Shown here in pieces: positions 1-36,903 of a stretch of DNA of 64,000 bases. Each line of letters opens with the position of its first letter. Positions within the stretch are counted from its first letter, which is position 1. The stretch comes from Styela clava (taxonomy: Eukaryota), in contig NC_135254.1 in the NCBI RefSeq assembly GCF_964204865.1, forward strand, positions 4,774,001 through 4,838,000. The letters run 5' to 3'. A program made the position numbers and the translations under genes. The notes under the pieces were generated by a model that ran no database searches, was not told the DNA's origin, and saw only the letters and a list, made by a program, of their open reading frames with translations.

Positions 1-1459
1 AAATATTACGGTATCCAATTTTGTAGTATATGGGTTGACAAAAAAATGTCAGTTTATTCAACATATTTTCATTAATAAATAATGCGAATAAATAGACTTT
101 ACACCGAATTTAATATATTGACAATACAGGCATCGTATTAGCCTAGTGTTTAGACTTGACTATGTTAGCATGTTTGATTAAAATACCCATGTTCAATTCA
201 TACCAGCACAATAAGACACCTCACCCTAAGTGTTGTATACACTGCTGAACAGGAGTATTTTAAGTTCTTTCCTGCTATGTAGAAGTTTCATATTCAGCAT
301 TGGATGCTTGTTCAAAGTCCTGTTTTGGGCAATGGAAGCTACAAATTTATCAAAAAATGCCCCAAAAATATTAATATTTAGCAGCCACTTAGTAGAGATC
401 TGCTATTAATTTGAAAGAACTAAAATCTTAAGCTTCGGCATTGACTACCCAATCTAACACACGCTGGGTGTGGTGGGGGTAGGGTGGAGGTGGGGGAGGC
501 ATGGAATTTAAACCTAAGATGTGTAATCTGAGATGCCCGCACAGTTGAGTCTTACGCTTCGGCTGCCTTGGTTGTTTTACTTATATTATGTTATGCCCAT
601 ACGGAAATCTCCCAAATACTATGTTGACAAAAAATTTCATCATAATATTTATAGTTTTATCGGTTCATTATTTGTAACAATTGATCAAATATATTATTTG
701 CACAATGGCTGCATTGGCAATATTGTTTTGGCTTTGTTGTAGATTTAATGAAGGCGAGTTCAAGATCAAAGTTAACATCTCAGTTCACTATCTTATGCTG
801 GAAACAGTGGAACCAGTGTTGCAGGAAATCTATCTAAATTCCCAGAAATTCTGTGAAATAAAAAAAGAATTATTATGCATAGAACAAAGGAAAAATTTGT
901 CAATCTGTACACTATGATATGGCAGCAAACATGTTGTGTTTCCACAAGCTCCACATTTCCCAACCACAAAACTAATGATGTGTTTTTTGGTCTCTATTTT
1001 TTGTAAAGTTAAAACTTTACTTTAAACGCGATTTATAATTTTCTTTCTTGCATTAGCGAATAAATATATGATATTGAATACTATTCATGTTATAATCCGG
1101 CCCACCGAGGACTTTATTTTCCCACATGTGGCCCGCCGACTAGAGAAGTTGCCCACCCCTAACATAGAGTGTCTGTCTCATTGAAAGGGCTTTTGGATCT
1201 GAATTTTTTCAAATAGGGATGGGCTTTTCAAATCAAATATTTGAATCAAATCGAATTGTAAATTATTAGAATCGGGCAAAACTTCATGTGAAGAAGCAAT
1301 CCTTTATTTACCTCAGATACCAATGCAAGTTCATTACTCAATTTAGTTTCAAGCGATAATTATCTACTTTGTTATTTCAGCAATTCAAGACCATTTATAT
1401 GAATGCATGTTGGGGAAAATGGACAAAGCATTATTTTGCCAGAGTGTCAAATGAATAAA

Positions 1460-4400
1460 TTATCTCACCATTATTGATGCATCAAACTCAAATTCCCTTG
1501 CCTTCAATGCTTTTTGCAGTTTCTTTGTATGATTTAGATCTGGATATCCATTGCTTAAATAAAAAATAATTGAAAATTTGTAAGTTTTGTATTTAACAAT
1601 GATAGATCCTGCCTGGGGGGTAATGAAGTACACAATTGGGTTCTAGGGATTTAAAGTCATTTTCGTCGTTCCCGAACCAAGATGGCAGACACCGGAATGT
1701 AGTATGTGCACCAGGTTTGGTACGGCCATAATTTTATTCCAATTTTCTTTAGTTCTATTACGAGTTCGGGCACTAGCCAAGTGACTCCCATAGTATTTCT
1801 ACCTGAAATCATAGCCTAACCCTAACCTGGTACACATACTACGTTCCAGTGTTCGCCATCTTGGTTAAATATTTCAGGAGTACCAAAATTTCGTCTGAGC
1901 AATTGAGAAAAAGTCATGATGGCTACAAATGGCCAATATAGTTTCTGTTTAAAGTTTGAGAAAACTTTAGCTTCATTAGACATTAGCTTCAAAAGTCTGA
2001 AATCAAAACTTTTTGACAAGACGAAAATACGACTCTGGCTTTGACGTCGATACCAAAAGGATTTCAAACTTTGTGTCATTTCACAATTTAAGATAAATTA
2101 TGGTATACCAAAAATTGTCCTAATTGACTTTACTTCTTGCTCATGTCACCATTGGTTTGATTGGAGTGAATTACAAGAATATCATTTGTACTAAGAACCA
2201 TAACCATGATGCAGATGCCAAAAATACAACATTTTAGAATTATAATATAAATATCCAATCCAGCGTTTCCCAAACTGTGTTCCGTCTTCCGAGTGTTCCG
2301 TGGAAAATAAATCAAAATACGTCTAAACGGGTCGCCATGGCGATCTAGGGATCGTGAAGTTGTCGCCCAACTGACCGTTCAATATCGTGTCTCGTTGGCC
2401 TAAAGCGGACTAACTAAGGTAGGGTAGGGGCATATTCGTTAACCGTCGGCCTTAGCTCTTTGACTGTTAAGTTCATTATCAAGTTTGCAGCAATAGGCAA
2501 ACAGGTAGGTCTTAAAGAATGAGGGCAAATGGTCAACTCTTCTTCCGTCATCTCTGTCTGATTTTACTTTGAAATGCTGAAAAATTTACTCATGTTCGCT
2601 AAACTCGATTCAGCAGATCAATAAACTGCAGCTCGCAAAGTTGCAGAAAGTACGTCTATCTCCATTAGACTTAACATTAAAGAGGCAAACACTACGTAAT
2701 CGAAAGTAAACGATATAGAAAGGTATAATGATTCATATACACAGCATTCAAATTGAGAAACAATAAAACATTTATAATAAATGAAATATGTAAAATATTC
2801 AATCATATTTTAGGTATGTTCAACATAATTCTGTTAGTTTTTGCGGCGCATTTGGCAACTCGCCACGACGAACCCATTGGGAACCGCTACATTACACCGT
2901 TTTTCTTTTTACCCTTTCATTTTTTAGTGTTCCGCGAGGCGAGATAAAAAGTGTAAGTGTTCCGTGGCCGAAAAAGTTTGGGAAACGCTAAATTCTAATC
3001 TATTTAATAAATACATTTGGTCATAGTGATTGATTATGTTTGAGACCGGTAGATCAAAAATAGTATGTCTTTCCAAATAAAATATATCATTTACAATTAA
3101 AGATACTTGAGAATAGTTCACAAAAAATCAAGAATAAATTCAAATGAAGTATCCATTATGCCTTTAATGCTTCAAAAATCTTTAAAAATCGGCAATACCC
3201 TAAATGTACTTCGAGCTGTAAACACAATTTTATAATATTTTTCCTGAATAGAAATTTAGTTATCAAAACTAATATTTTGAAAGAACTTTGAATTTTGTTG
3301 TAGAGCAATACCCAGTAATAACCTAATTTGAAGTAGGGTAAGTAATCATAAAACATACAACGCACTCACTTCTCTGGCCCTCCAGTTTTATTAGTCTTAT
3401 GAGGAAACTCATCGTTCCAAACAATTTTTCCTCGTCTGTCACCAACTTCTTGAATCTTGAAAATCAATCCTGCATTGAATGCTTGATGGAGTAAGTTGTG
3501 ACATATGTTTCCATCAAAAGTATTTGGCAAATATTCCGTGTATTCCTGAGCTTCATATAAAAAACCCTGGAGAAACAAACATAACTAATCATCTATCATA
3601 CCTGGGGATTTGTTAAAACGTAAATAAATATCAGAATATCTATGAACATTCACTAGAAGTAAGTCAAATAACTTTCTATCAAAATACTTGGTATTTTAAT
3701 TTTAAAACATCATTTTAACTTGACAACGGGATAACTCAATTATACGTTGAAAATCAGAAATTATGGCTATGTCAGGATTTCACCGCACCATTAAATCTAA
3801 TTCTAAATTAAAAATAGATGAACTAAATTCTATGAACATCTTATTTGATATTATTCAGATTTCAACAAGAATGATCTATATATTGCTATGTTATGATTTT
3901 ACTACACAAACTATTTTTCTATTTGAATTTTATATCAATACCAAATTTTTTAATGCTTTGATTTCCATTAGAACTGAATTCGATCAGGATACCCAGTTTA
4001 AATTAATCATAGACGGACAAAGCATGAACCAGAGTCAACACATATATTATAAGCATTATACCAATACTGCATGATTCTGTATATTTCTATGGGAGGCAAT
4101 AACTCATGTGGGTTATTGTAAACATTAACAATACCGCATTCAAACTTCTGGGCTGTGCGAAGGCCTACGGTTAAAGCGTTAGACTGAACTAAGCTGACAT
4201 CACATATTGAACATCTCGGTTCAGATCCCCATGCCCACCACCTCATCCAGGGTGAAATAAACGCGAACCAGAAATGCCTGATTCTTTGAAAAAATAATAA
4301 TAGCTCTTTAAATATAATTACGGTAGATATCAGTGGCTGCTTGTATAGGTCCTTGTTCAGAGCAAAAGTCATGAATAATAAAAATAAATTACTGGGGATA

Positions 4401-7400
4401 GCCAATACCCTATACCAGTACCCGAGTGCCACTAACATATCAAAGAAACTAGCTAGCAAGAACTCGTTGAAATATACACAATGTTATGAAAGCGTGTTTC
4501 TCACTGAATTCGGTGTGACAATTTTAAATAGCAGTTTTCTTTAGAAATTTTTGCGTCTTAACTAAACATTTCTGCCAAGACCCGAACATCGCACCATAGG
4601 ATCAATCAAAAATATAAACAATTTTTTATGCTTGTATATACTGTACAGTAGAAACTTCACCTTACAAAAATTCTGTTTGTTAAAATATTGTTTCGACTAA
4701 CGTAAGAGTTTCTACATAAGAAAGGCCGAAAATTGAAAACAAAAAACGCGTGTAGTGACATTTGTTTATTTTACGTTAATGCAGTGCTTGAAGCCCGGGT
4801 GTCCAATTCATCCGGCCCGTGGTCAACGTTTTGATCCAAAACACTTCACAATTATTTCATTTTTTAACGTATTCATAGGCAGTCGGTAGTAAATTACAGT
4901 CGGCATGAAAGGATTTCAATCAGCTCTGACTTGAAGTGCTTGTTACACATCACGGATATTTTTCATTAAAAATATTTTACAAATATTATAGTATATTTCA
5001 ATTTTTTCAAGGTAGTTTGTGCGACCTCGGCAATAAATCTAGAAGCAAATTGTTTAATTAATTGCATTCATCCTTTCATTTAATAGTGACCGAACACAGG
5101 GGAAATTTATTTCATTTCTTGCAATTTAGACTAGAGCTTATAAAATATTTCATAATTAATATATAGTATGTATCGCGGCGTCGTTGATGACAATATCGTT
5201 CAGTTTAAGTTAACGGTATCAATATATATTCAAAAATGAAATCATAACAGCCGACATGAAATATTTAAATCAGCGCCGAATGGCAAAATAAAAGAAGTCT
5301 TTCGGTCCTAATTCTTAAAACTGCAAAATAAAAAGAGTAAATTCTAATTTTAAATTTCATGTGCGTGTGCTCATTTTTGTACATTACGCTCTCTCTTAGA
5401 TTTCAACTTTTAACGCCTCCTCCGACCACCTCATCTCCGTGGTCTTCGCTTAGCCCAGTCAAATAGTATACCAAAATTTATGGGGGCTTGGAGCGGATGA
5501 ATGCATTTTCAGGTAAAAAGCATCCATACTTACGAACTTTTCTACTTACGAAGGGGCTTGGAACAAAATAATTTTTTACCATTACGGAAACCTTTTCACA
5601 AGTAGAAAATTCTGCAAGGTACACATGGCGAGAAGAAAGAACAGAGAAATACTAAATAAAAACTACAAATTTTTGTATCCAGAGATGTACTTAGAGACGT
5701 ATGTAGAGTTTAGAGGCCCGCGGTTTCACTCAGTTACTTTTATTTGGCCCGCCTAAAAAAAGGTTGCGCACCCCTGCTCCACTTAGTAGTTTTTGGCATA
5801 TGTAATGATTTTGCATCTCACTCACAATAAAATATATATTTGTAACCACTCAATGAATCGATTCATAAAGTTTACAATTACCGTACAATAATTGCACCAA
5901 GAATTATAGGCCATTTCTAAATATTACTTTCAAAGATTTGTGATTCCTCTTTATTGCACTGGCATTCGATGCATAAAATCGATTTTCATATATATATATA
6001 TATATATACTAATTTGCATTTGAGGATCAATATTATGTATAAGAACCTTCTTGATTAAGAATCTTGATTTGATTAAATCTATAGTTTATTTTCCAACCGA
6101 CAATTAAATTGGTTTCATATCTCACCATCAGACTTCCAGCAGGAAATGAGTAGGTGATGACACTAGTCCACACTCTTTCATATCCTGGCAGTGATTCAAG
6201 CAATAAATTCCTTCTCATCTCCCATCCAGATGGTTGTTGGTTGATGGTTATTAGACCAGATGTAGTTTGAATTGAAGATTGAGATTCTGCACCTGGATGA
6301 ATGAAACCAGAACTTGTAGCAAAAATAATGTTTGTTCTTATTTAAGCAAAAATGCTTGCGATTGAGGGGTTCGATGATATTTAAAGGGTACCATGATATA
6401 TTAAAATTATAAAATGAAAGAATGAAAATTATGGTTCCTGGATGTAAGTGAGCTTTTGTGTGATTATTTGAGTTTTGGGACAATGCCATGGCCTAGCGGT
6501 TAAACTGTAAGATGGCATTACAGATTACACATTTCAGGTTTAATATCTATACCACCCTCCTTGAGTCAAAGTGTATAATAGATTGGGCAGGCAATGCCTT
6601 ACAAAAAAAATCAGGTTCTCCAGAATAAAGTACCTTCCTACAAATCAATAGATATCAGTGGCTGCAAGTGTATGACCTCGTTTGTTAATTAATGTCTTAT
6701 AAAATGAATTCATCAAACATTTTCTGAGAAGTTGAGTTTATGGTTTACCAATACTTTAAATATGCTGAATCATGAGTTTATCCAGTAACTCAAATCTGGG
6801 TCAGAGGTCACATTTTAGCCCTAAAATGAGAATTTTGATGGGAACATTCCAAATTCCCAGTCTAAGACCCCCCGATTTATGAAAACTTACACAGAAGGCA
6901 CGTTATTCCTGACTTTTAGTATTCAATGTATTACTTTCATTACCATTAAGTGGTTTGGATTGGGCAGAGCCATAACCCGATGCACCCCCTGTGGCGAAAG
7001 ATTCTTCCTCATCATCTTCTGAAGAGCTTGAATTTGGTTGGAACAGGGGATTCTCTGCATTTGGTTTTTCCTCGGCTTTTGAAGATGCTCGTGAAAATAT
7101 TTCATCCACAAGGGAATCGTAGCATCTCTCTGAATTTTTTACTAAAGGCTCAATTCGAACTGTCTTTTTCAAAAACTCTAGAGATGAATCTTTGAGTTTA
7201 ATGAAACTAAACAAGTCTTGAAAGATTTTTTTTCTGTTTTTGACATCATGTTTTACCCATTTTATCATCGCCTCATATTTGACAGCCTCAGAAGAATAAT
7301 TTGTTTCTGAAGATTTGAAAAGTCTTAGTATGTCTTTTTTACTGATATCAAGAAATTCATTTTTCTTGCTAATTTGGTCAAAATTTGTCGCCAAGTATCG

Positions 7401-8246
7401 ATTAATGGAATCTTTAACTGTCATTTGTTCAGGAACTTCATTGGTTTCAGAAAGATTCTTCAAGATAAAGCAGTTGTTAATATCAAGGTTTGTCTCAAGT
7501 TTTTTGAAATCAGAAAATAATGCAGTGATTACCAATTTCTTGCCTGTTTTATTGTTTTTAACAATGGGTTCTTTGAGGACAGTTTCCAGGAGAAATTTGA
7601 AGGGAAATTGCTGAATGCAGACAAGCTCAGAAACGTCTACGTTATCTTTTCCTCTTGCCCATGTTACCACAGCTTTCCATGATGTTTGGTAAGTCTCGTT
7701 TCTCATGTAACGCAAGAGATCTGATTTGGTGATGAATGGAAACATTTCGGAAGAAATAATGGATTCGAAATTATCAATCGCGATCTTTTCGGCTTGTTGT
7801 TTTAGATCACGGCGATCATACATTTGAGCCAAGTTGATTACAGAGAGACAATTTATTGGAGAAATGTTAATTTCCAAGAATTGAAAACAAAGATTCGTTA
7901 ATTCCTCCATTTGTAAAAGATTGGAAGCATGCAGGATATGCTTAATGTTTTCTAATTTCAAATCTGCCTTTCCTTTATACATGAACTCTATGCATTGTGC
8001 GATCGCATCCTGATCGACATCCTTCATATTAATGTGACCGTCATGGACCTCCTTCAAGTTGCTTGAAAACATAGCTTCAAAGTATTCTGAAGAGGCTGCC
8101 AAGACAGTACGATGCACTTGAAATGATTGGTCGCCAACGTTGATGTTGAAATCGCAAAGAAACCCTTTCTCTTTGAACCTGTCATATGATGTCATGAGAC
8201 GATCTGACTGTTTTGCTCTAGCCTGGTTTATTACTTGTGAATTCAT
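1460..8246 (-). CDS. BTB-BACK-BACK-Deltex C-terminal (DTC) domain fusion protein, copy 1 (4 coding exons, 586 aa)
   Basis: Exons 8246-6944 (donor AATG|GTAATG, phase 1), 6292-6126 (CATCCAG|, ATG|GTGAGA, phase 0), 3566-3370 (CTCCAG|, AA|GTGAGT, phase 2) and 1553-1460 (TTTAAG|, TAA). They total 1761 nt in one open frame. Exon 1 encodes a BTB (CDFNINVG..VHRTVLAASSEYFEAMFSSNLKE) and two BACK-like repeats. Exons 2-4 read NQQPSG..SLPGYERVWTSVITYSFPAG / YLPNTFDG..LLHQAFNAGLIF..IVWNDEFPHKTNKTGGPE / NGYPDLNHTKKLQKALKA, which matches DTX3/DTX3L-type DTC motifs. Confidence 0.85.
1655..1885. mobile_element. Palindromic MITE family with internal CCTAACC repeats (other copies 13390-13480, 18188-18376)
   Basis: 1676-1718 is inverted to 1824-1866. 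The 18188-18376 copy has TIRs GGTACTCCCGAAGTATGTGAAC / GTTCACATACTTCTGGAGTACC. Confidence 0.7.
2261..2990. mobile_element. hAT (Charlie-like) MITE in intron 3 of copy 1, probably with a nested related element
   Basis: TIRs CAGCGTTTCCCAAACT / AGTTTGGGAAACGCT and subterminal GTGTTCCG repeats. A second TTGGGAACCGCT end lies at ~2880. Confidence 0.7.
3370..3566 (-). CDS. Exon 3 of copy 1: core of Deltex C-terminal domain
   Basis: GFLYEAQEYTEYLPNTFDGNICHNLLHQAFNAGLIFKIQEVGDRRGKIVWNDEFPHKTNKTGGPE, bounded by consensus AG and GTGAGT. Carries the YLP..G..LL..AF..LIF..WND..HKT..GGP Deltex signature. Confidence 0.88.
4150..4400 (+). mobile_element. tRNA-derived SINE (paralogous copy 21147-21350; related copies ~6487-6690, ~21955-22150, ~130-260)
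   Basis: Pol III A-box-like GGCCTACGGTTAAAGCG and B-box GGTTCAGATCCC, followed by a shared GATATCAGTGGCTGC core. No intact cloverleaf. Confidence 0.6.
4795..5776. mobile_element. Decayed Charlie-like hAT MITE(s) in intron 2 of copy 1
   Basis: GGGTGTCCAA..CCGGCCCG start and TTGGCCCGCC..GGTTGCGCACCCCTG end. Absent from the copy 2 intron. Confidence 0.5.
6944..8246 (-). CDS. Exon 1 of copy 1: BTB + tandem BACK domains + acidic/Ser linker
   Basis: ORF 6903-8246 with canonical Kelch-family BTB motifs, including the LKE (phi-x-E) CUL3-contact motif. The second BACK reads NF..I.K..EFLDISK..SEAVKYEAMIKWVKHD..R. No Kelch repeats. Confidence 0.92.
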
Positions 8247-11200
8247 CTTCTTTCTTTTACAATTTAAGCATTAAAGTAAGATATGAAAATGGTAGTTTAG
8301 TTTCTATCAAGCATGCCTTGAATAAAAAAAGTTTCAACTTTACTAGCTCAGCTCACAAACAACCTAGAATCAGACATAGCTCAACAAACTGGACCATAGA
8401 ATGGCAAAATATCAAGTTAGTATTGTCATGATATATTGATAATTGGTCTGAGCGCTGAAAACTAAAAATATCAGCTAAATCAATTACAAGGTTCAAGAAG
8501 TCACCGCAATTTTCCCACAATTTTAAATGAGTAGGATATGCCAGACCAGACTAAGAATTATAGCAGCCACTAATAATTTGAATATATCTGTTCATAACAC
8601 TTTTATGGAAGCGAAGCAACACGAAATGCATGACTTTTTTAGAATTTAACAAGTTATAATGTTTTAGAATCGGTTTTGGTTTGTTTTATTTCAACTCTGC
8701 CTCTTATCTTTTTGGTATTTACTCTATCACATTATATCATATACTCATATTTCACTCTTTATTTTATTTAAAGAAGACATAAATTTACATTTTCCTATTC
8801 AAAAGAGACAATAAATTTAGCCATAAAATACACTACCATAAGATGACAAGTCAAAATTTGTCAAATTCGATCAAGAGTTCAAAATGAAAAGTTAAATATT
8901 TAGTTCATTGACGTAACAATAATGCATAAATGCTAAAAATCTCTTTTATACTGCTTATTGAATAGAATTCTAGAGTATATTTACGACCCTGTTAAATATA
9001 AACATCAATACAGTGATTACTATTATAAGAAAATGTAGATCAAAAATGAAACCTTTCTTGCAAGATTTTGAGAAATATTTGAATAAATGTGACTGATTTT
9101 GATTGCACAAATTGATTGGTAACTTAATTAATTAATGTAGTAGTATTAATGTATTTAATGTGAGCTTGCCAGATTCCAAGATTTATTCATTCATTTCACA
9201 GTCATATCAACAAAAATGAACATCAAGATATAATGATCAATAAATGATAGGCCTAAATTTAGGCATACTGCCCTGTTTTCAGACGTGACTTATAAAATAT
9301 ATATTTCTAATAAAATGAATCAAGATAATAAATTTGCGAACATCAGCATGATACTTTTATAACATTATAACACAAACCTTGCTTACAATGAATCTGACAC
9401 TATTTAATAAAAGTCGTATAACATAAAATAAACAAGCTAAATATTGCTAAACTTCCAGACTAATCTGACCAGCTGTTCATGGGACCTTCTGTTACAAATT
9501 ATGTGTATATGCCTTTTTATGTTTACTCTGAATTATTGATAGAGTCTATTATAATTTTTAACTCAAATCCTATCAATTCCATAATTTTGAAGTTTTGGGT
9601 GAGTTTTATATAAGTTCATGTGATGAGAGTATTTGGCAGGAAACAATGTTTCGTTTCGCTTGAAAAAGGTTGATGAATATGGATTTTGAATACATATACT
9701 TAATTAATAAATTTCAATAACTTGAAAATGACATAAATTTTGCCAAAGTTGTGAACAGTCGAACAGGAGGTTTGTACTATGTAATTAGTTACCTTCTGTA
9801 ATTTGTCCCTGATTTCACATAGCTGGTTGCCGTAATCAGAAATGCAAACAAACCATTTTTAATAAGAGGTCACTTAATGAAAAATTCCTATTCGTTATCT
9901 CCTCGTAACACGTATCCCTGTTTGCTTTGTATTTCATATTAGATTTTACTTTTAACAAAATGTAGTTTTTGTAATATGCAAAATCAGGTTTTATTATTTT
10001 TAATTCACTATGAATAATTGTCCGCAAACTAGGAATAAAACAATACATATCTATATAAATATATTGTTAGAACATATTATGATATACTAGTACATATTAT
10101 TAGTATATGATTCTTGTGAATTCACTACCTCATTGTTATTTTCCCGAATATAACGACCTGAACTATTCTGAGTCTCACCCCAACCGTTATTTTGTGAATT
10201 GTATATTATCTCTTGGCCCCACAGTAGGATGGGGCTGGTAATGCCTGAATTCAAAATTGCCATTGCATGACAGAATAAATATGAATACTTGAACTTGGGA
10301 AGAATTTTATAATGAATATGAAAATCCAAAAGTGCGGATGTTGGGACTTGTAATTATGACTGAGATTTTGGCATGTTGAGTCAAATACATTAATATCGTA
10401 TGTTAGAGATTTTTGTGATAATCCTGATGAGTCTTGTGGCCAATCTAAGCAAATCACATAATATCAAACTAGATTATCTGGTGTATTAAGATAACACCTA
10501 ACAAGGCCATATCTATCATAATGGAGTAAGGCATTGGCTAGTTATGATCTGAGCAGAAAATATAAAAAGGTAATAAATTAAAACTTAATCAATCGAAGAA
10601 AATACACAATTGCTGAACTTCTGAAGGTGATAATGTAGATTTTGGTCACAAATAGAAGACTGGAAATAAGTTGTGAGATAAATGACATAGGCCTTAGCTG
10701 CTTCATCAGCTGCTTATCAATGGACAGAAACCTAATATTGTTTAAGTTACTGCATCACGATGAAATTGGTAAATTATAGAGCACTGTAAGAACATTATCA
10801 GTCTAGAATCCAGCACCTTTCAGAATGAAACTTGACAAATTGATGCCCTCTTACCCTGGAAGTTACTTTCGACCCTTATACAAACCAATAAGTCACTAAC
10901 ACTCCAGTAACTTTAATCTTTTTTTGATCAAGTAAAATATGCCTATTTTTCTGCAACATTTACCTAGTTGACATTCTGAACACCTACACAATTAACTGAG
11001 CCCATTTATTGAATCTGTCTTACTATTTTTGAACAATTAAATATAGAAGTCATTTTAAACATTAATTGAGATTTGTATACTCCCTTATTGTTTTCATACG
11101 TTTTTCATCTTAAAGTCGTCCTAATTAAAACGGATTTACTTAGTATATTGTTAATTCTTCCTAATTGGTCCTATTTATTTCATTCATGCATCCATTTATT

Positions 11201-14467: not shown

Positions 14468-17400
14468 GTCTAAACAGAGAGTAGATCTCTGTTACCAAGG
14501 TTCACAAACTGGGGTACACTCCTATTTAAATGTATAAACAACTCAGTAAGGGGAAACTAAGAACAAAACTGTATATTTTGTACAAGAAAATTGCAGCGCT
14601 CAAAATCAATCTAGAAATTCAACAGAGTAATTATTGTATATAAAACTGCACAAATAGAAAAATTACATTCGACGAATCTGGATTATTGAATACGTATAAA
14701 TTCACTAAAACAAATCTGCATAGGTGTATTTGATCTTGGCATCAACTGAATATGTCTCAAATAAATCTACTCGACAAAAGTGTGAAACATAGTAATGTAT
14801 AAACTTTATTCTTATAAATGATAATAGCCTACAGGGGAAACTAAAATGAAAAATGCTATTTTCCCCCTATGTAATCAACAAGAAAGCATTTGCAAATCAC
14901 AGAGCAATAGAAAATTTTATTGATCTTCTCGCAAATCCCAAATTCTATATCATGGCTATAAAGTCAGCAGACAGATACAGCTTTCCTTTACCTCAAGAAA
15001 AATTTATAAATCCTATCCTGTCCTTTGTAATGAGGAGGTTAATTGATATTTTGTAATTTGCAGACTACCAAAAACTACTCTATCATACTAGCCTACTTAC
15101 TTATACAGCATCTCAGTAAGTAGAATCTCAGTAAGGAATCACTTCAATAGAACTGTATATTAACTGGAGCAAAGTTGCAGTGTTTAATATGATTCATAAA
15201 ATTTAAACTGACCAAGTACAGTAAATAGAACTGCCCAAAGAAAAATTTAAAAAAGATGAATCTGCATTATTATTTAAACATAAAATACACACAAACAAGT
15301 CTGCATTGGAGTTATTGTAATTATGCTTAGATGAATGCAGTTAGGCCATCAAATGTTTGTTTCAAATAATGATAGTCAAAGTGGTTCACATCAAAATTCC
15401 AAAACATATTCCTACGTAAATCTCAGAAATAATCAGAATGTTTCCCAAAATACACTGAACAATGAGAATATCATGGATAAATTGGTATTTGTATTGATAC
15501 AAAATAAATTCTTTAATAAATTATCTCATGGGGGAATGACTTTGAGTACCGAAGTACAACAACAGGCTACTATAACAGGCTAAAGGCTATCAACAACCAT
15601 TATAAACCTTTTATTTAAGAAAAACAAAGTTGGTTTTTAGATAAATGATATGATGAAAAATTACGATGCTCTGGAAATATTGGTATAAGTATTAACACAA
15701 TCGAAACTAAACAACAAATTATAAACAGACCATTTAATTAAGGCATTATCTGACTTTAGACATATACAGTAGCAACTTTGATTAAGAATAGACTATAAAT
15801 TTCAGAAAGCATAATAGCAACCATTGATAAAATGAACAAAAAGCATAAACAAGATGTAATAATTTAAGAACTACTGCTACCTGGAAACATTTACCATTAT
15901 TTAAATACGAAGCAACCACAAGAATAATGAGAACAAAATAGAATTAAAAATAAAAGTACATATTGAGTCAATTATCACTTGTGGATAAAAAGAAAAAAGT
16001 AAATATCATAACATTTTGTATAAAAGGATAAAATTGATGAGTCGTGCCTTGTGCACAATATTATAGGTCTCGTGCTCGTGTCTAATTTGCCATATAAATT
16101 TAAACTATATCATTTAAAGGCAGATAATTATTTCAACTCAACGAGAACCAAATAACAAACCATTGTCATTGCATAACAGATCAAATAAAAATACTTGAAC
16201 TTGGGAAGCGTTTTATAATGATAATGAAATCCAGAACGTTCATATGTAAATACTAGGACTTGTAGAACAATTATTATGGCTGAAATGTCAGATCAAATAA
16301 ATTCATATCGTATGTTAGAGATCTTTGTGATAACCCTAAAATAAAAAGGCGTATGTAATAATTGAGAACTACTCATATTGAAACTAAATACCAACTAGAC
16401 TGAAGTTGACTGGGTCAATAACAAAATGACTGGAGTAAATTCAAATCATCAAATTAAAGCATTGGAATCTTCAATTTTGCTTTCTCAACTGTCTAAGACC
16501 AGAAATAGAGAGGATAATTAGATAGCTATCGCCATATCCAATCTGTTATAACACGGGAAGTAACTCAGGGCCATGGCAATATGTTATGCTTGACATGAAT
16601 AACTAGATGAACTATGGAAAGTTATTTGGTAATAGTTGGCTAAAGTGTTTGTCATTGAATAACTAGTCGCGCTCATGACTAGAAAAAAGCTCTCGAGCCC
16701 ACCGGAAAAATGTGGTCACTTCAACGATGGTTAAATTCTCAGAAGAGTGTTCATCAGATATGCATACATTACTTGTATATAATCAACCTTTTATTCAATG
16801 AAATCATGCAGACGAACAATAATCAAGATCAAATAAAAAAACTGGTAGACGCATAATTCCAAGAACACATCTATTATATATAGAAATGGTTCTCAAACGG
16901 TGGGAACTACAGGGGGAGTTTTATTTACCGTACATTTCTTTATTTTGGATATTTGCATTCCAGCCTTGTATTTTCAACAAGTTTTTTGAATAAAATATAC
17001 CAGTACCTTTGCCTTACTATCTTTTAATTGTAGCTTATTGTTAGCTAGTTATTTTTAGGTGGGGAAACTAAATAAATTCTCAAACTAGGCTTAAAAGTTT
17101 TAGAAACACTGATATATAAACAATCAATAATCAAAGAAATTGTTCCAAATATAAAATCTTCAAATTTCGTGAATTGCATAAACCAATTTCAATGTAATAA
17201 AAAAAGGACAACAATCCTAGGTGTTTTTGAAAAAACAACGATTAGTGTTATTTCCATCTTGAAGCACACAAAGATAAAACAATCAGTAATCTAATTTCTC
17301 AATATTTTTTTTTGTATATATCAAACGAACTTAAATTTCTCTGTTTCGGATATCTAAAATTCATAATTTTCATTTATGAAGGGAAATCACATCACTCCTA

Positions 17401-18187
17401 AGAGAGAAGCACCTTGTGGGTCAAATGGTACGCACAAGGAGAGGACCATAAATATTAAAATGAGCCATGTAAAACACTAGGCAACAATGGTACGAAACAA
17501 TGGCATTCTTTAAATCTTTTAAAGTGGAAGGCATATTCAAGCTTAGGTAGAAGAGAAAATGAAAACTGAGCTATTGTAGTGTTAGTTCGTAGATGGGACT
17601 GAGAGAATGACATTTATGAAATACTGACCTAAGCATTACATAAAAGTCAAGTCATGTTTTTCAGCATTTTGACAGCTGAAAAGTTGACAATTGGCAACAC
17701 AACTGGTGATGTCCAAAACTGGTCAGGTGACTGAATGGTTGGAGGTGTTGCAAGCTGAATGGAATGTAGTGAGTTCAGAACTTCTTGTATGAAGTATACA
17801 TATGCAGTAGATCCAATTATGAAATATACAACACTATATTGATACTCGGAAAAGATATAAAACTGTCCAATTGAATATCGACACATAGGTAAGAGAGAAA
17901 TAAGGAAGTGTTTTTCCATGCGAGCTTTATCACTTGAGGATACCAACAGTCGAGCAAGTCAACTTCCGGTGACTTATTGAAAAAAATGTGTAATTTGACT
18001 TGATGCTATTACGTGATTGCACGATCTTAAATTTGTAATAAATAAAATTTGAAAAGGTCATGCCAAAATGGGAACATAATTGTTAGAGTGAGTGAGCCTA
18101 TTCCAATTGAATGCAAGGAACAATGTAAGACTTGGGCTCAATTGCAAAAGTAATGAATGATAAAAAGTAAAAATTCATATTGAAAGA

Positions 18188-18376
18188 GGTACTCCCGAAG
18201 TATGTGAACGAGGTTAGGGTTAGGGCATAATTTAAGATACAAATACTACGGGAAGTTTCGAACTCGTAATAGAACTGAAAAAAGGAAAATTGAAATAAAA
18301 TATGGCCTATCTCCAATCTGGTACACATACTAGGTTCTGATGTCCGCCATCTTGGTTCACATACTTCTGGAGTACC
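18188..18376. mobile_element. Palindromic MITE (GGTACTCC...GGAGTACC termini)
   Basis: 22-bp near-perfect TIRs. Interior shared with 1655-1885 and 13390-13480. Confidence 0.75.
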
Positions 18377-20090
18377 GAAAAATATTTATAACAGTAGGAT
18401 ATGCAAATGTCATAATGCTCACACAAAATTGCAACATGAACATTAATACAATGGGCCCAGTGGGTAAAGCATTAAATTCCGTCAGTTGGTATCACAGTTC
18501 CTTATGTTGGCTCAATGGCTCATTACTTACCAGTGGATGGTGATACAGAAAATTGTTGGGGAGGTGACAATGTGAAAATGTTGTCTAAAACATTGAATCG
18601 GGATCAAGTATTCTTTTTATATTTGTGAAACAATAAACAATTGCATATTTTAATATTTCTTAAAAATTCTAGTATAATTTGCATAAAACGAGAATTAAAA
18701 GCAAATACTGTAGGTATAAATCACAGTATTTGTCAGTCATGTCTACAGGGCAGAATTTGCTAGAATTGAATAAATGGAGATCAAAATAAATTACTATTAT
18801 ATCACAGTATCAGTTCAGTTTAAACTGTCACAAATGCGATATAATAAAAATGTAAAAAATTAGAAAACCTAATAGATATCATTATATTTACTGGTTATTA
18901 AGCAGGGTAAAAAATAATATCAGAATATTTAGAATTAATAACAACTGACTGAACATTTAAGGGGCTACAATAAATAACTTTCCGAGCTCAAATTCTGATT
19001 CCAAAATATTCCAAGCAATATGATTTTTACTAATATCATGATCTGTCAAGTGTCAATACAAAATTGAGCCGATATGGAAATTGCACGATTACAATTCGGA
19101 TTATTAAATTTTCTCATAATATTTATAGTTTTATTGCTTCATCATTTATAATATTTGATTAAAAACAACATTAGCATAACAGCTGCAATGAAATTATTAT
19201 CTTGGCCCTTGATGCAGTTTTAATGAAGGCAAGTTCAATATCAAAGTTCACTATCCTATGCAGGAAACAGTGCAATCAGTGTTGCAGGAAATCTCTCAAG
19301 TTTGCTTTCCAGAATTTCTGTGAAATAAATTTTTTTTTTATGAGAGTCAATTAAACGAAGCAAAAATTTGTCAATCTGTACATTATGATAGGGCAGCTCA
19401 TTCAAATATATTGTTTTTGCTATAACTATCATATCCATCCAAGCTACTAATTTCCCAAACTACCAAACTAATTTCTTGTCACTGGTAAAATTACAGTATC
19501 TGTAAAAAATGTTAGTCATTCACATATCAGTGGATGATTGTACAGAGCCTTGTCCGGAGGTACGAACATAAACAAAAAAGGGGTATGAAAAATTGTTATC
19601 TCTATATTTTCAAATTACTTTATCTTACACATTTGTACTACAATAGTGAAATGGCCAAGCAGTTACTTGAAATCAAAAGAACTGGGTAGAATTGAAATTG
19701 GGGCCTGGATTTATATTATCAATAAAACCTGCACAGCACACGGAGTGTCTCATTAAAGATAGCGCTTTCAAATTTGCACTTCAAAACCTTTGAAAACCAT
19801 GTGATTGTGATATCATATATGACAGTGGAGCACTTTATGATGTCTTTGGGGCTGGGCTTTTCAAATCGAATATTAGAATTAAATCGAATTGTAAATTGTT
19901 GAATCTGAGTAAACTTCATGTAAACGAGCGACCTTTTATCTACCTCGATACCAAAAGCAAGTTCATTACTCAATTCAGTTTCAAGTGATGATTATCTAAT
20001 TGTTATTTCAGAAATTTAAGACTATTTATATGGATGCATTTCGGGAGAGTGGACTCAGCAATATTTTTCCAGAGTGTCAAGTTAATACAA

Positions 20091-23000
20091 TTATCTCACC
20101 GGTATTGATACATCAAACACGAATCCTTTCACCTCCAATGCTTCTATCAGTTTCATTGTATGGTTCGGATCTGGATAACCATTGCTGAAGAAGAATAAGT
20201 TCATGAGCTATGTTTGAACATGCTCATAGACAAAATAATAGAAGTATGGTAAGTTTTTTGTTAAACAATGCTGGATCATGATCTTAGAGTTTTAAAGTGC
20301 AGAACTTGGTTCTATGGAATTATAGTGCAATACGCAGGGTAAACAAAATTTCAAAATTTGTTTTATTCTTCCTTATCTGCCAATATTTTTTGAAATACAG
20401 TAAATACTCATCAATCACAAAACACGCAAAGTACTTACTTCTCAGTTCCTTCAGTATTATTAGTCTTATGAGGAATATCATCGCTCCAAACAAGATTTCC
20501 TCTTCTATTACCAACTTCTTGAATCTTGAAAATCGATCCTGCAATGAATGCTTGATTGAGTAAGTTGAGATATATCCATCCATCATTAGTATTTGGCAAA
20601 TATTCAGCAAAATCTTGTGCCTCATATGAAATTCCCTAAAGAAAAAAACATAACTAATCATCTCTAATACATTGGAATTGGTTAAAACTGATATAAATAT
20701 GAGAATATCTATGAACATTCACCAGAAGTCAAATGAAAATTTCATCAAAATACTTGGTATTTTCATTTTCAATATATTATTTCAATTTGAAAACTCCATA
20801 CCTCAATTATACATTGAAATCAGGACCTATCCATGGGGAATCTTGTTAAATATTTGGCTATGCCATGATTTTATTGCACCATTGGGCCTAAATCAAAGTG
20901 AAAATAGAAGAACTAAATTACAAGCATCTTAAATTCAAATAAATAATTTAATTTTATTCAGATTTCAACAAGCTTCACATGACTATTTTATGATTCTACT
21001 GCATTTATAAATACTTTATTTAATCTTTGTCTCAAAAACAAACGTTTCAAAGCATTGATTTCCATCAGAACTGAATTCTATGACCATACCCAGTCTAAAT
21101 TAGGTATAGACGGACAAAGCACGAACCAGAGTCAACCCATATAAGCCTGTGAAATGGCCTAACGGTTAAAGTGTTAGGCTGAACTATGCTGACATTACAT
21201 ATTGAACATCTCGGTTCAAATCCCCATTCCAAGAGTGAAATAAATTGAATAGGAAATGCAGAACTAGAAAATCATACTATATAGGCATGAAAATCATAAA
21301 TTATAGGTTTTTCTTAAAAAATCATTAGATATCAGTGGTTGCTTGTATAGGGACCAAAGAATTATAGAATATCAAATCATTAGATTGTAGATATCCCTAA
21401 ATATTTTTTTCAACAAATTGTGATTCTTCAGTTATTACACTGGTATTTAATTAAGGAATGATTATTCAATCAAGTGAAGTTCTAATGCGCAGTGGGGATT
21501 TATATTATGCATAAGAACCTTCTTGAATAAGACTGTTGAATATAGAAAATCCATAATTTATTTTCCCACCAACAATTAAATTTGTTTCATAACTCACCTT
21601 CAGACATCCAGCAGGAAATGAGTAGGTGATGACAATAGCACCCATTCTTTCATATCCTGGCAGTAATTCTTGCAAGAAATCCCATGACAGCTTCCCATCA
21701 GGCGGTTGTTGATTGATAATTCTTAGACCAGGAGTAGTTTGATTTGAAGAGTGAGATTCTGCATCTGGATTAATAAAACCAAAACTTGTAGCAAAATCAA
21801 TGTTTCATTTTTTTAAGCAAAAATGCTCGTGATTAAGAGGTTCGGTAATATTTAAAAGGTACCATAATATCTACAAATTATATGTATTCGTAAAATGAAA
21901 ATGAACTGAAAGTTAATTGAGTTATTGATGGTTATTTGAGTTTTGGGCCATGCCATGGCCTTGTGGTTGAAGTGCTATAATTAACTGTAGGCATTACAGA
22001 TTACACATCTTAGATTTAAACCCTATTCCACCCCTCATCCCAAGTGTGTAATTAGTTGACAGGCAATGCCTAACAGAAAAAACTCTGGTTCTCCAGAATA
22101 AATTATCTCTTTACATATCAATAGATATCAATCGTTTCAAGTACATAGCCTTGTTTGTAACATAACATCTTAAAAAAAGTTTTAATGTATAAAATATCTC
22201 GGATAGGTTGAGTTTATGGAAAAACAACACGGACATGGGCAAATTCAAATATGCTGAATCATGAAATTATACAGTAACTGAGACCTGGTTCAGAGACATC
22301 ATTTAGACAAAGTAATATAAAATCTACTCCATTTTATAGATTTTATAATTTATTCATACATGTGGCTTTTGCAACGCTAAGGCTTGAAATTTAGTTCAAT
22401 TCCGTTTGCACCTAGACATAGACATGAATACAAAATGCTTTTCAGTATTATCAAATTTTTCGATTAATGAGCTGATGCAGCAGATATCCGAGGTTAATTA
22501 TTAGCCCTAAAATGAGAGTTTCAATGAGAGATATTTCAGATTCACATTGTAAGACCGCCGTTCCATACAAACTGACAGGGAAAGTACGGTATCTTTGTTT
22601 TTCAGTATTTAAAGTATAATAAACCTTCATTAGGTGGTCTGGAACTGACAGTGCCATAACCCGATGCACATCCAACGTCAGAAGATCCTTCTCGTCATCC
22701 TCTGAAGATTTTGAATCTGGTAAAGTCAAGGAATTATCTGCATTTGGTTTTTCTTCACCTTTTGAAGATGCTCTATATATGAATTCATCCACTATTAGAT
22801 CATAGCACTTGTCTGACTTTCTTACTAAAGGTTCGAGTCGAACTGTCTCTTTTAGAAACTTGAGAGATAAATCTTTGACTTTAATGAAACTAAACAAGTC
22901 TTGGAAGATTTTTCTTCTGTTTTTGACATCGTATTTCACCCATTTCATCATCGACTCATATTTGACAGCCTCCGAAGTATACTTTGTGACTGAAGATTTG

Positions 23001-23929
23001 AAAAGTCTTAGTATATCATCCTTGCTGATATCCAGAAATTCATTTTTCTTACTAATTTGTTCAAAATTTGTCTCCAAAAATCGTGTAATGGTATCCTTAA
23101 CTGCCGTTTGTTCAGGAACTAGATTGGTTTCAAAAAGATTCTTCAATATAAAGCAGTTGTCAATATCAAGGTTTGTCTCGAGTTTTTTAGCATCAGAAAA
23201 TAATGCAGTGATTACCGATTTCTCAGCTGTTTTATTGTTTTTAACAATGGGTTCTTTAAGGACAGTTTCCAGAAGAAATTTGAAGGGAATTTGATCGATG
23301 CATACAAGTTCAGAAATATCTACGTTTTTTTTTCCATTTGCCCATGCCACCACGGCTTTCCATGATGTTTGGTAAGTCTCATTTCTCATGTAGCGCAAGA
23401 GATCTGATTTGGTGATGAATGGAAACATTTTGGAAGAAATAACAGATTGGAAATTATCAATCACGACCTGTTCGGCTTGTTGTTTTATATCATGGCGATT
23501 ATACATATGAGCCAGGTTGATTACAGAGAGACAATTTATAGGAGAAATCTTAATTTTCAAGAATTGAAAACAAAGATTTGTTAATTCCACCATTTGTAAA
23601 AGATTGGAAGCATGCAGGATATGCTGAATGTTTTCTATTTTTAAATCTGCTTTTCCTTTATACATGAACTCTACGCATTGTGCGATTCCATCCTGATCAA
23701 CCCCCTTCATATTAACTTGACCATCATGAACTTCCTTCAAGTTGCTTGAAAACATTGCTTCAAAGTATTCTGAAGAGGCTGCCAAGACAGTACGATGCAC
23801 TCGGAATGATTTTTCACCAACGTTGATGTTGAAATCGCAAAGAAATCCTTTTTCTTTGAACCTGTCATATGATGTCATGAGACGGTCTGACTGTTTTGCT
23901 ATAGTCTGGTCTATTACTTGTGAATTCAT
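20091..23929 (-). CDS. BTB-BACK-BACK-DTC fusion protein, copy 2 (possible frameshift at end of exon 1)
   Basis: Exons 23929-~22625, 21764-21598 (167 nt), 20635-20439 (197 nt) and 20184-20091 (94 nt). Exons 2-4 have the same sizes as in copy 1, are all open and have consensus splice sites. They translate QQPPDGK..LLPGYERMGAIVITYSFPAG / YLPNTNDG..VWSDDIPHKT / NGYPDPNHTMKLIEALEVKG. A 1-nt deletion near 22690 shifts the phase of the homologous donor. Confidence 0.7.
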
Positions 23930-24679
23930 CTTCGTACACTCACTAAACTGAGATATAAAAATTATAATTAGCGAGCGTGAACTGCAAACATTAATGTATC
24001 TATCTATTAGAAGTTAGCTTTGACCTTACTTTTACAAATGAAACATAGCTCAACAAACTAGACCATAGAATTGTGAAATATCATGTTTGTAATGTCTTTA
24101 TGTATAGATAAGGGGTCTGAACACTTCAAAAATATGAAATCTCAGCTGAATCAATGCAAACAAACCACTATTTGTATAAGGCCACTTAATAATAAAAATT
24201 CTTGTTTACTATCTCCTTGTGGCACGCATCACTGTTTGTTTTGTCTTTCGTAATAGACTTTACTTTTAACAAAATGTAGTTTTTGTAACATGCAAAATTA
24301 AGTTTTAAAATAAAAAAGAATTCTGATCTTAAATTTATTATTCAAAAAAATATCCAAAAGTTGTATTTATTATTAAAATTATTTTTGATTTATCCTGATT
24401 AGTTGAATAATTGGTTGAATAATAACAAATGATAATCCCAAAGTTGTTTCATTAATATACTGACTAATTAAACTTCACCGTAAGTATTGTTACAAATATT
24501 AATACAACTAAAACGGAAATACATTAATGCCATAATAATTCTATTTATCACAACGTCATCTAAATGAATATTTGCAGCTATATAATCAACAAAAAAGTAT
24601 TTGCAAGTCAAAAAGCAATAAAAGATTTTATTAACCTTCATTCAAATCCTATATCATAACTATAAAGTCGGAAGACAGA

Positions 24680-32092: not shown

Positions 32093-32880
32093 GTTTGTTT
32101 GTCAACGCACCGGTCTGCCGGTACTGTATGTTTAGCTATACCTCCCAGTTTTGTTCGGCAATGGAATGATGATTCGTACAATTTTCTTGTAAAATTGATT
32201 CAGATTCAGATTCAGATATTTATTTCCGTCATGCAAGAAATATTGTACAAATAAACAGTAAAAATAAATCGAGAGAAGAAATAACAGACGTACAATAATT
32301 CGACTGCAATAGACGAGGAGTCGCGAATAAACTATAAAGTTAACGTGTCAGCGACACCTAAATAGCTGTAAACAGCAGCAGATGAAGTTAAATAAACAGG
32401 ATTTAAACATATATATTTTTTGAATGAACACAATTTGGAAAATGTAAGTCGAATTGGGGAAGTCAGTTAGGAGAAAATAGTTAAATCGAAGATAATCATG
32501 AGAAACGAGAGAAAAACAAGAGCGCGTCAGGAGGGGAAAAAATGCTCAAATCGTCAGCGTCATGCTCGGGTCGGCACCGTCACAGCTGTCGGGCTTCTGA
32601 TTGACATGACGCTGCCTTGCGGAGATAAATTACGGGGAATTCCCAGCAAACCATAATAAGGGAATTAGTTTTGGAGGTATAAATACATAATGAAGTTTGG
32701 GCAACAGAATCACAATACGAGAGGTTAAGTACACGGCGAAGAGATTTGGGGTAACGTAGCTTGTGTAAGAATAGTGAAAATATTCAATAACGCTGGAAAT
32801 GAATGATATGAACAAATAAGAAAAACATCACATTCAGCAAAATTGTCATCAAATACAGGATTGATGACCAGTGAATTAGA

Positions 32881-35823: not shown

Positions 35824-35910
35824 TTATCTTAGGGAGAATATGAAAAATGGATATATATACACTTGATAATATTAAAAGTTAATAAATAGACATGAATATC
35901 ATATAATAAC

Positions 35911-36903
35911 CTACTTTATTAAAAGCAGATCATCTTCAGTGATTATGGGGATGGTAGCAGTATCCAGGTTCTTTTTGATAAGAACTCTTCCATTATTTGT
36001 CCATAAAAATTTATATCCACAAGCACGCTTTAAATCCCTGGCTTTAAAAAATAGATCTTTATTGGTATCCGAAAGATTTTCGATGACAAATACTTTGGTT
36101 GACCTGGAGATTTTTGGAAAAACTGTTGAAATGTCAAGTGATTTGATTTTGCTTCGATTCTTTATTATTCGGTCTCTCGTTTTTCTATTGATAAATTTGG
36201 CAATTATTGGTGATGGTTTTTTTTTATTATTTTTTGATAATCTATGGCAGTTTGAGATGTCGAATGATTGTATGGGGACATCAATTTTTTTACACAAGTC
36301 GGTAATCAGATTTTCACAGTTTTCACCGGTTGAGAATGGTATGTTGTGTAATTCCAGGTTATCAAGTCTGGAGCGACGTTCATGGTCTTGCTGTCGCTCT
36401 GTTAAAATGTCAATTTCCTCCTCTAGTTCTTGTACTAGATTTTCTAGGTCAGCCACTCTTTTTTTTGTTTTGATTGCTAATTTTTTGAGCTCACTTTGGC
36501 TGGAACAAAGCTCATCAAACTTTTTTGACATGAAGTGCTGGCTCTCTTTTATTTCATGAATCTCATTTTTGATTAGACCGAAGGATGTTACTTCTGTTTT
36601 GATCTCGTTTATAGAGTCTTTCAAAGATGTTAAAGATTCTTCTAAGCATGCACTGTTGGTGATGGCATGTGTCGAGTCAAAAGTAGATCTTTCTAGATGT
36701 TTCTCAATATGTTGTTCAATGATGGCAAGTATCTCGATGCGTAAAGTCTTAAGGACTGTACTTTCGAGAACAGACACCAAATTTGTAACGTCGTCTAACT
36801 CAATAGTGTTGGTCATTGTTGCAGCAGTACGCATAGGTTGATTGCTTGGACTCTTTCTTCTGGGTGGTGGAGAAGGAGCGCTGGATTTGCTAGGTGTATC
36901 CAT
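35911..36903 (-). CDS. LINE ORF1 (coiled coil + RRM/CTD, L1-transposase/FP-like), 330 aa
   Basis: Heptad coiled coil followed by NLELHNIP..CHRL..PIIAKF..FVIENLS..GYKFLWTNNG; lies directly upstream of ORF2. Confidence 0.9.
   Translation of the reverse strand: MDTPSKSSAPSPPPRRKSPSNQPMRTAATMTNTIELDDVTNLVSVLESTVLKTLRIEILAIIEQHIEKHLERSTFDSTHAITNSACLEESLTSLKDSINEIKTEVTSFGLIKNEIHEIKESQHFMSKKFDELCSSQSELKKLAIKTKKRVADLENLVQELEEEIDILTERQQDHERRSRLDNLELHNIPFSTGENCENLITDLCKKIDVPIQSFDISNCHRLSKNNKKKPSPIIAKFINRKTRDRIIKNRSKIKSLDISTVFPKISRSTKVFVIENLSDTNKDLFFKARDLKRACGYKFLWTNNGRVLIKKNLDTATIPIITEDDLLLIK

Follow-up and report, generated by a model that had tools for sequence, protein, structure and literature searches.

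We analysed a 64-kb window of the genome of the tunicate Styela clava, a solitary ascidian (C5:4774001-4838000 of a 377-Mb assembly), which opens on a gene, hereafter gene A, that joins the BTB and BACK domains typical of cullin-3 (CUL3) adaptors to the DTC domain of the Deltex ubiquitin ligases. With its four exons intact, gene A belongs to a Styela-lineage family of about 50 BTB-BACK-DTC genes organised in tandem arrays. Its protein consists of a BTB and an extended double BACK stalk, connected to a DTC of Deltex fold by a flexible linker that is about 55-70 residues long. The BTB-BACK head is under purifying selection and appears, from its sequence and predicted fold, to bear all the marks of a CUL3 adaptor. 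The DTC concentrates its variation in three patches, and the residues of its pocket suggest that the fold was kept while the Deltex chemistry was lost. On this basis, we consider it somewhat better than an even chance that the gene A product is a receptor of cullin-3-RING ligase (CRL3) type, with the DTC as its variable target-binding end.

Gene A lies on the minus strand, like all the features described for it below, and is signalled by an open reading frame (ORF) of 447 codons (8246-6903). A first, sequence-only reading of the window had proposed that this ORF is spliced in frame to three small downstream exons, and the four exons were found as claimed: their 1303, 167, 197 and 94 nt add up to 1761 nt, in phases 1, 0 and 2 and with AG/GT borders. 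Exon 1 (6944..8246; 1303 nt, 434 codons) ends in phase 1 at G6944, followed by the donor GTAATG, and encodes the BTB, the 3-box/BACK region, a second BACK and an acidic, Ser-rich linker. Intron 1 (6293..6943, GT...AG) separates it from exon 2 (6126..6292; 167 nt, from G6292 after AG to G6126 before GT), which completes the linker and begins the DTC with its first strands, marked by the QQP, LPGYE and YSFPAG motifs. Beyond intron 2 (3567..6125), exon 3 (3370..3566; 197 nt, from G3566 after AG to A3370 before GT) carries the core of the DTC, with YLP, a helix, WND, PHKT and GGPE; it was also recovered by a whole-genome DTC scan, at C5:4777369-4777566. Intron 3 (1554..3369, GT...AG) leads to exon 4 (1460..1553; 94 nt, starting at C1553 after AG), which encodes GYPD and the last helix up to the stop codon TAA at 1462-1460.

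This structure was compared with that of 16 further paralogs on contig C5. All 16 have four exons with AG/GT borders and open frames, and their indels are multiples of three only; exon 2 measures 161, 164 or 167 nt, exon 3 194, 197 or 200 nt and exon 4 88 or 94 nt. Because these paralogs keep the four exons, the sites and the frames, the exon pattern of gene A is far above chance. One alternative end is also conserved. A GTGAGA donor after base 1469, just ahead of the exon 4 stop, is present in gene A (1463-1469) and in paralog B, the second copy in the window (20094-20100, minus strand), and older gene models extend through it to a short alternative C-terminal exon; read-through of exon 4 ending in ...VR-stop is found in 15 of 17 paralogs. 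About 60 nt beyond the exon 4 stop are likewise conserved between gene A and paralog B.

Paralog B itself (20091..23929, minus strand; exons 23929-22625, 21764-21598, 20635-20439 and 20184-20091) had been read as retaining the exon sizes and splice sites of gene A. This is the case for exons 2-4 (167, 197 and 94 nt, AG/GT) but not for exon 1: its donor is 3 nt downstream, and one nucleotide is deleted near 22691/22692, so that in this assembly it no longer reads in frame into exon 2. Its use as an intact control was discarded because of this frameshift. P0017 (598 aa), an older allele, is intact. The frameshift represents a null allele that segregates or else an error in the assembly.

The domain content was assessed by profile searches performed exon by exon on gene A, with allele P0058 (for the C-terminal half) and the full-length paralog P0003 as proxies. 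BTB, BACK and DTC were all matched in Pfam, in agreement with the predicted fusion. Exon 1 matched BTB over residues 22-125 (PF00651, E 1.4e-27) and BACK in two stretches (PF07707, E 1.2e-24). The DTC profile (PF18102) was matched at positions 3-36 by exon 2 (E 0.037) and at positions 48-110 by exon 3 (E 5.6e-9, 36.7 bits for a cut-off of 25). Exon 4 had no Pfam match when searched alone; by way of allele P0058 it aligns with the end of the DTC of human DTX3L. In the intact paralog P0003, positions 3-132 of the DTC profile were matched with 83.7 bits. No HPxPG-type motif was detected in any frame of positions 1-8300, which cover intron 2, or 15000-24000, and the HPNPG loop is absent from all RefSeq paralogs. 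The profile gap of about 10 positions therefore reflects a family-wide deletion of 6 residues, and a missed micro-exon encoding the loop was ruled out. No kinase or RING exon that could claim the DTC exons was found in the window.

Databases model this locus in different ways. RefSeq model P0001 (LOC144411715, 520 aa), 100% identical to gene A over the exon 1 residues, uses the same exon 1-exon 2 junction, passes the exon 2 donor and runs into intron 2 for 33 codons before a stop. The older RefSeq entry P0058 (264 aa, DTX3L-like) is 91-96% identical to gene A and has its best genomic matches here; exon 2 is 96% identical to its residues 109-164, and it joins exons 2, 3 and 4 as proposed for gene A, differing after ...SIM. 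The fusion had been described as hidden, which is true of the gene A locus only, where our analysis corrects a truncated model, since for dozens of paralogs in S. clava RefSeq already has a model of 580-600 aa with BTB+BACK+DTC, named 'uncharacterized protein'. These data bear on a different explanation, in which gene A yields a BTB-BACK-only protein and exons 3 and 4 are a decaying remnant or serve rare isoforms. It would account for the premature end of P0001, for family entries made of BTB-BACK only (P0008, P0014 and P0021) and for the broken frame of the neighbouring paralog B in this assembly. However, the reading frame of gene A is open through exons 2-4, which have a polypyrimidine tract and borders of consensus GT/AG type, P0058 joins these very exons, and the frames are kept in all 16 other paralogs. 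We consequently regard loss of the DTC from the product as unlikely.

The head of the protein was compared with known CUL3 adaptors. The BTB domain (residues 22-125, 7872..8183) aligns with KLHL3 42-184 and with KLHL11. It is followed by the 3-box and a first BACK-like helical segment (residues 126-260, 7467..7871), over which the KLHL3 alignment extends to residue 164, and by a second BACK stretch (residues 275-363, 7158..7424), which gives the best PF07707 match (profile 14-102) and a second KLHL3 alignment (173-273). The acidic, Ser-rich linker (residues 366-434, 6945..7151) is predicted to be disordered and runs on into codons 1-17 of exon 2. The structural model of P0003 shows the same four parts: a BTB, a helical BACK stalk up to about residue 397 with predicted local distance difference test (pLDDT) values above 90, a linker (residues 394-449) below 50, and the DTC; the residues equivalent to the 3-box and first BACK segment are all helical in it, again with pLDDT above 90. 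In Foldseek, the P0003 head retrieved BTB domains with template modelling (TM) scores of 0.88-0.89, the matching folds being those of KLHL11-CUL3, KBTBD2-CUL3-RBX1, KLHL3-CUL3 and vaccinia A55-CUL3. Residues F130-S131-E132 of KLHL11, in the alpha3-beta4 loop, insert into CUL3 (PMC3597819), and L64-K65-E66 of gene A (8049..8057) fall at this position when aligned by phmmer with chains 3i3n and 4ap2. The proposal of a CUL3-adaptor-like head is thus borne out by the loop, by the 3-box aligned to KLHL3 and by nearest folds that are all CUL3-bound adaptors. The head was also predicted to be associated with no RING, and no RING family was matched in Pfam by gene A exon 1 or by the full-length P0003 and P0088; a search for open C3HC4-type patterns likewise found none in any frame of the 64-kb window, and the family proteins have none.

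The C-terminal domain is a DTC of the DTX3/DTX3L type, as first read from its motifs. Besides the Pfam matches of exons 2 and 3, the model of allele P0058, whose DTC part has pLDDT values of 93-98, superimposes on the human DTX3L DTC (3PG6) with a TM score of 0.84 and a root-mean-square deviation of 2.0 A in Foldseek, and its next matches are the RING-DTC structures of DTX1 and DTX2. The pocket of this domain is well characterised in Deltex ligases. ADP-ribose is contacted in DTX2 by Arg535, Trp578, His582 and His594, and the triple mutant S568A/H582A/H594A, designed to abolish ADP-ribose binding, no longer ubiquitinated the poly-ADP-ribosylated substrate (PMC7442474). His582 and Glu608 form the DTX2 catalytic pair, called strictly conserved in DTX proteins; they correspond to H707 and E733 of DTX3L, in which Tyr719 stands for His594 (PMC7615817, PMC11460948). 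H707, E733 and Y719 mutants of DTX3L were all assayed, and Y719A is defective in the ubiquitination of single-stranded DNA (PMC11460948).

At the positions of Arg535, Trp578, His582, His594 and Glu608, the residues of gene A are Tyr, Trp, Pro, Asn and Ala, respectively, and six residues of the HPNPG loop are missing. The Tyr at the Arg535 position is encoded at 3540..3542; the Pro at the catalytic His582/His707 position at 3402..3404, with the following His retained; the Asn at the adenine-stacking His594/Tyr719 site at 1550..1552; and the Ala at the catalytic Glu608/Glu733 position at 1508..1510. These assignments come from the alignment and from a census of 69 Styela-type DTCs and 124 other DTCs, which extends them to the whole family. 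The Arg535 position is Phe in 66/69 Styela-type DTCs, including most paralogs of gene A, and Arg in 98/124 others; His582 is replaced by Pro in 65/69 and is His in 89/124; the His594/Tyr719 position is Asn in 63/69 and Tyr or Phe in 100/124; Glu608 is replaced by Ala in 63/69 and is Glu in 88/124. The HPNPG loop is absent from 69/69 Styela-type DTCs, whereas its His is kept in 102/124 others. Only Trp578 was Trp in all 69.

These substitutions weigh on the function that the sequence-only reading had assigned to the domain, namely a CRL3 receptor that keeps the Deltex pocket and has ADP-ribosylated proteins, NAD+ or the 3' ends of nucleic acids as its ligands, with RBX1 as its RING. The fully retained fold, with DTX3L as the closest solved relative, and the conservation of Trp578, of the second His of the HHKT motif, of GGP and of GYPD are what such a receptor would display. 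But Arg535, the catalytic pair, His594/Tyr719 and the pocket-side loop are replaced or deleted in 63-69 of the 69 sequences, ubiquitination was lost in the DTX2 triple mutant and defective in DTX3L Y719A, and the fast-evolving positions of the domain, described below, differ from the known pocket positions. Because of these replacements and of the deleted loop, canonical binding of ADP-ribose by gene A is unlikely, as is binding of NAD+ or nucleic-acid 3' ends, and we find a receptor with a working Deltex pocket improbable. For the same reasons, together with the lack of a RING, the gene A protein cannot be an ADP-ribose ubiquitin ligase of Deltex type.

We then compared the selection acting on the two ends of the protein. 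The ratio of nonsynonymous to synonymous divergence (dN/dS) was calculated by the Nei-Gojobori method on the 16 intact C5 paralogs, with bootstrap over codons. It was 0.29 (0.23-0.36) for exon 1, 0.17 for the BTB and 0.37 for the linker, revealing purifying selection on the head. In contrast, it reached 1.09 (0.78-1.60) for the whole DTC and, without any selection of sites, 2.42 (1.38-4.85) for the DTC part of exon 2. The variation falls in three patches. Patch 1 (6195..6221, exon 2 codons 24-32) covers the first DTC beta-strand, where the per-codon proportion of nonsynonymous differences (pN) was 0.19-0.59 and 4-7 different residues occur among the 16 paralogs. Patch 2 (6162..6176, exon 2 codons 39-43) is the loop following LPGYE. 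Patch 3 (3498..3524 and 3486-3488, exon 3 codons 15-23 and codon 27) comprises the beginning of the helix and the loop that follows YLP, and carries in-frame indels among paralogs. Outside these patches, DTC positions were nearly invariant in the 16 paralogs. For the hypervariable codons, which were picked post hoc, dN was 0.50 and dS 0.10, with intron-flank divergence (K) of 0.08-0.28. The same patches vary in a second genomic cluster, and do so in kinase-linked as well as BTB-linked cassettes. A simpler statement, of a rate of divergence some threefold higher in the DTC than in the BTB, was rejected: it is roughly true for dN only (0.09-0.17 versus 0.024-0.065), and overall DNA identity (78-92% for the DTC versus 87-90% for the BTB) shows no threefold difference. 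Synonymous divergence was about 0.10 in the DTC exons versus 0.22 in exon 1.

The close homologs of gene A are all S. clava proteins, most of them annotated with BTB, BACK and DTC. A six-frame scan of the genome gave at least 52 DTC exon matches and at least 79 BTB-BACK exon matches, concentrated at C5 2.6-6.0 Mb, C6 21.7-22.5 Mb and C19 1.45-1.74 Mb. The DTC cassette is not restricted to BTB genes. About 14 DTC exon sets of C5 have no BTB exon, and for each of them a protein kinase encoded in a single exon is found 6-11 kb upstream; these genes are interleaved with the BTB genes at C5 2.65-4.44 Mb (for example the kinase at C5:3102288-3103034, with a DTC exon at C5:3109332), and RefSeq gives them the architecture kinase, coiled coil, DTC. 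The cassette-linked Ser/Thr kinases retain the catalytic Lys and the HRD, DFG and APE motifs, and meet the cassette at the same phase-1 junction, ahead of a common Ser-rich linker. A third head, in P0080, P0076 and P0069 of a 24,297,679-bp contig, consists of a coiled coil and about 300 residues. It had no Pfam match in P0080 and P0076; the ESM Atlas places it beside ZU5/UPA/FIIND clusters with a score of 0.92, a lead from which we call it ZU5/UPA-like. S. clava also has DTC proteins that bear a RING, such as P0110. In addition, the genome has further large tandem arrays, with at least 25 single-exon kinase copies at C10 4.06-4.38 Mb (ORFs of about 295-319 aa) and about 11 single-exon BTB-BACK ORFs of 590-713 aa at C14 3.85-3.95 Mb.

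In order to trace the origin of the cassette, a tree of DTC sequences was examined. The Styela clade was monophyletic, with support of 95 in the Shimodaira-Hasegawa-like approximate likelihood ratio test (SH-aLRT). The nearest DTCs belonged to uncharacterised proteins of DTX3L-like type in vertebrates, namely frogs, coelacanth, tuatara and teleosts, a group placed as sister to the Styela clade with an SH-aLRT of 93 on a short branch that was not starred. Within the Styela clade, cassettes grouped by genomic cluster and not by head type, which, together with the lower dS of the DTC exons, suggests gene conversion or repeated head swapping by exon shuffling. The history initially proposed, in which a DTC replaced the Kelch repeats and the RING of Deltex was dropped, is too simple, the same cassette being found behind the kinase and ZU5/UPA-like heads. 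Moreover, its nearest DTC relatives, the vertebrate DTX3L-like proteins, share the Phe, Pro and Asn and are mostly RING-less. A Ciona protein consisting of a DTC only (P0137, 208 aa) also lacks the catalytic pair.

The first reading did not know the combination of BTB and DTC from characterised proteins, and this is supported. A HMMER search of 1.84 billion representatives found BTB+DTC only in S. clava and in one product of a Logan contig, and no description of BTB+DTC, Styela+Deltex or Styela+BTB was found in the searchable literature, including a recent preprint on DTX3L evolution. The ESM Atlas returned only BTB-BACK clusters for it, below 0.9. The Logan product, P0088 (2175-nt contig), is a BTB-BACK-DTC protein at most 42% identical to any copy in the S. 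clava genome and, because of this low identity, probably comes from another species.

These results suggest a model for the gene A protein. The BTB would dimerise and, with the 3-box, dock on CUL3-RBX1 as in KLHL and KBTBD adaptors, and the DTC-fold domain would bind the target in lieu of the Kelch propeller. Its target would be something other than ADP-ribose, most likely proteins, recognised through the three putative surface patches, whose rate of change exceeds that of synonymous sites, whereas the head and the remainder of the fold are conserved. Several points weigh against such a receptor. P0001 ends in intron 2, so exons 3 and 4 may be unused in the tissues sampled. We infer CUL3 binding from homology only, and some BTB-BACK proteins act independently of CUL3. 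The hypervariable codons were chosen after viewing the data and paralog pairs are non-independent; moreover, the low dS of the DTC exons suggests gene conversion, which distorts dN/dS. In addition, the three patches may not form a single surface. Finally, nucleotide binding keeps some likelihood, given that Trp578, the second His and GGP/GYPD are retained.

A CUL3-independent role can also be envisaged, in which the BTB-BACK part dimerises or acts as a scaffold and the DTC is a decoy or competitor mimicking the DTC of the animal's own Deltex proteins, for instance by trapping pathogen factors or Deltex partners. The same cassette on non-cullin heads (kinase, ZU5/UPA-like) would be in line with this, as would the loss of catalytic residues in a preserved fold and the presence of RING-bearing DTC proteins such as P0110 in the same species. 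However, the BTB is the most constrained part of the protein, with its CUL3-contact motif and 3-box kept, and a decoy would be expected to conserve the surface that it mimics rather than to diversify three patches. A decoy is in our opinion doubtful, and the CRL3-type receptor is the explanation that we retain.

The receptor may be one of several uses of the cassette. Since BTB, kinase and possibly ZU5/UPA heads all carry it, the family resembles a single, diversifying module for recognition that has been connected to various effectors. Such a combination of a diversifying module and varied effectors is typical of host-pathogen or self/non-self conflict, and an immune or conflict role fits the pattern. 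More specifically, but with only a modest likelihood, the DTC cassette could be the module for hypervariable recognition in a system of the tunicate lineage, innate-immune or self/non-self, with three effector heads, in which the CUL3 adaptor would lead to degradation, the Ser/Thr kinase to signalling and the ZU5/UPA (FIIND-like) head to death-fold signalling.

The remainder of the window contains mobile elements. Two non-LTR retrotransposon copies occupy 30594-36903, with a split reverse-transcriptase ORF at 30594-32092 (plus strand), an intact one of 980 aa at 32881-35823 (minus strand) and, upstream of the latter, a 330-aa ORF at 35911-36903 (minus strand) that matches Pfam Baculo_FP_2nd (E 5.8e-11). 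A fragment of a piggyBac-type transposase is found at 52006-52656 (minus strand; Pfam DDE_Tnp_1_7, E 4.9e-31).

If automatic annotation is set aside, the only known role of the DTC is that of the catalytic, ADP-ribose-binding partner of the RING in Deltex ligases. Here, it appears as a fold freed from Deltex chemistry and made into an evolvable binding module, in at least 70 copies carried by adaptor, kinase and possibly ZU5/UPA heads. These genes make up a large family that is a candidate for a role in immunity or conflict in an invertebrate chordate. Should CUL3 binding and the recognition of targets be confirmed, gene A would represent a new class of substrate receptors for CRL3 ligases and a natural experiment in which a catalytic pocket was traded for a variable recognition surface; should the immune role hold true, this would be a previously undescribed use of the DTC fold outside ubiquitin-ADP-ribose chemistry.

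Compared with the BTB-BACK-Kelch adaptors of CRL3 (KLHL3, KLHL11, KBTBD2), gene A has the same BTB fold, hydrophobic-x-Glu loop, 3-box and BACK stalk, but its BACK is extended or duplicated and is followed by a disordered linker and a C-terminal DTC instead of a Kelch propeller. With the RING-DTC ligases DTX3L and DTX3 it shares the DTC fold (TM 0.82-0.84 to 3PG6, 36-42% identity) and GGPxxxGYPD-type motifs, and it differs from them by having no RING, by the replacement of the catalytic pair, Arg535 and His594/Tyr719, and by the deletion of the HPNPG loop. The DTX3L-like proteins of NID/RRM-KH-DTC architecture in non-mammalian vertebrates (P0139, P0155, P0157, P0166, P0177, P0197 and P0209; coelacanth H3AJ71 is an example) have a pocket like that of the Styela family: Phe, Pro and Asn occupy the positions of Arg535, His582 and Tyr719, and the catalytic Glu is missing. 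They had no Pfam RING at E<=1e-5, a C3HC4-like pattern being present in 2/9; UniRef nevertheless names them RING-type E3 transferases. Unlike the Styela proteins, they keep the HPNPG loop and a DTX3L-type N-terminus, have no BTB or kinase head and show no large tandem expansion in these data. The Styela kinase-coiled-coil-DTC and ZU5/UPA-like-DTC genes of the same arrays have the same cassette, phase-1 junction, dead pocket and hypervariable patches as gene A and differ in the head. As for the evolutionary mode, expanded and positively selected families of MATH-BTB CRL3 adaptor genes were reportedly described in nematodes and grasses by Thomas in 2006 (Genome Research). Like the Styela family, they are large and arranged in tandem, and their cullin-binding end is conserved while their substrate-binding end diversifies, but they belong to other lineages and their recognition domain is a MATH, whereas that of Styela is a DTC.

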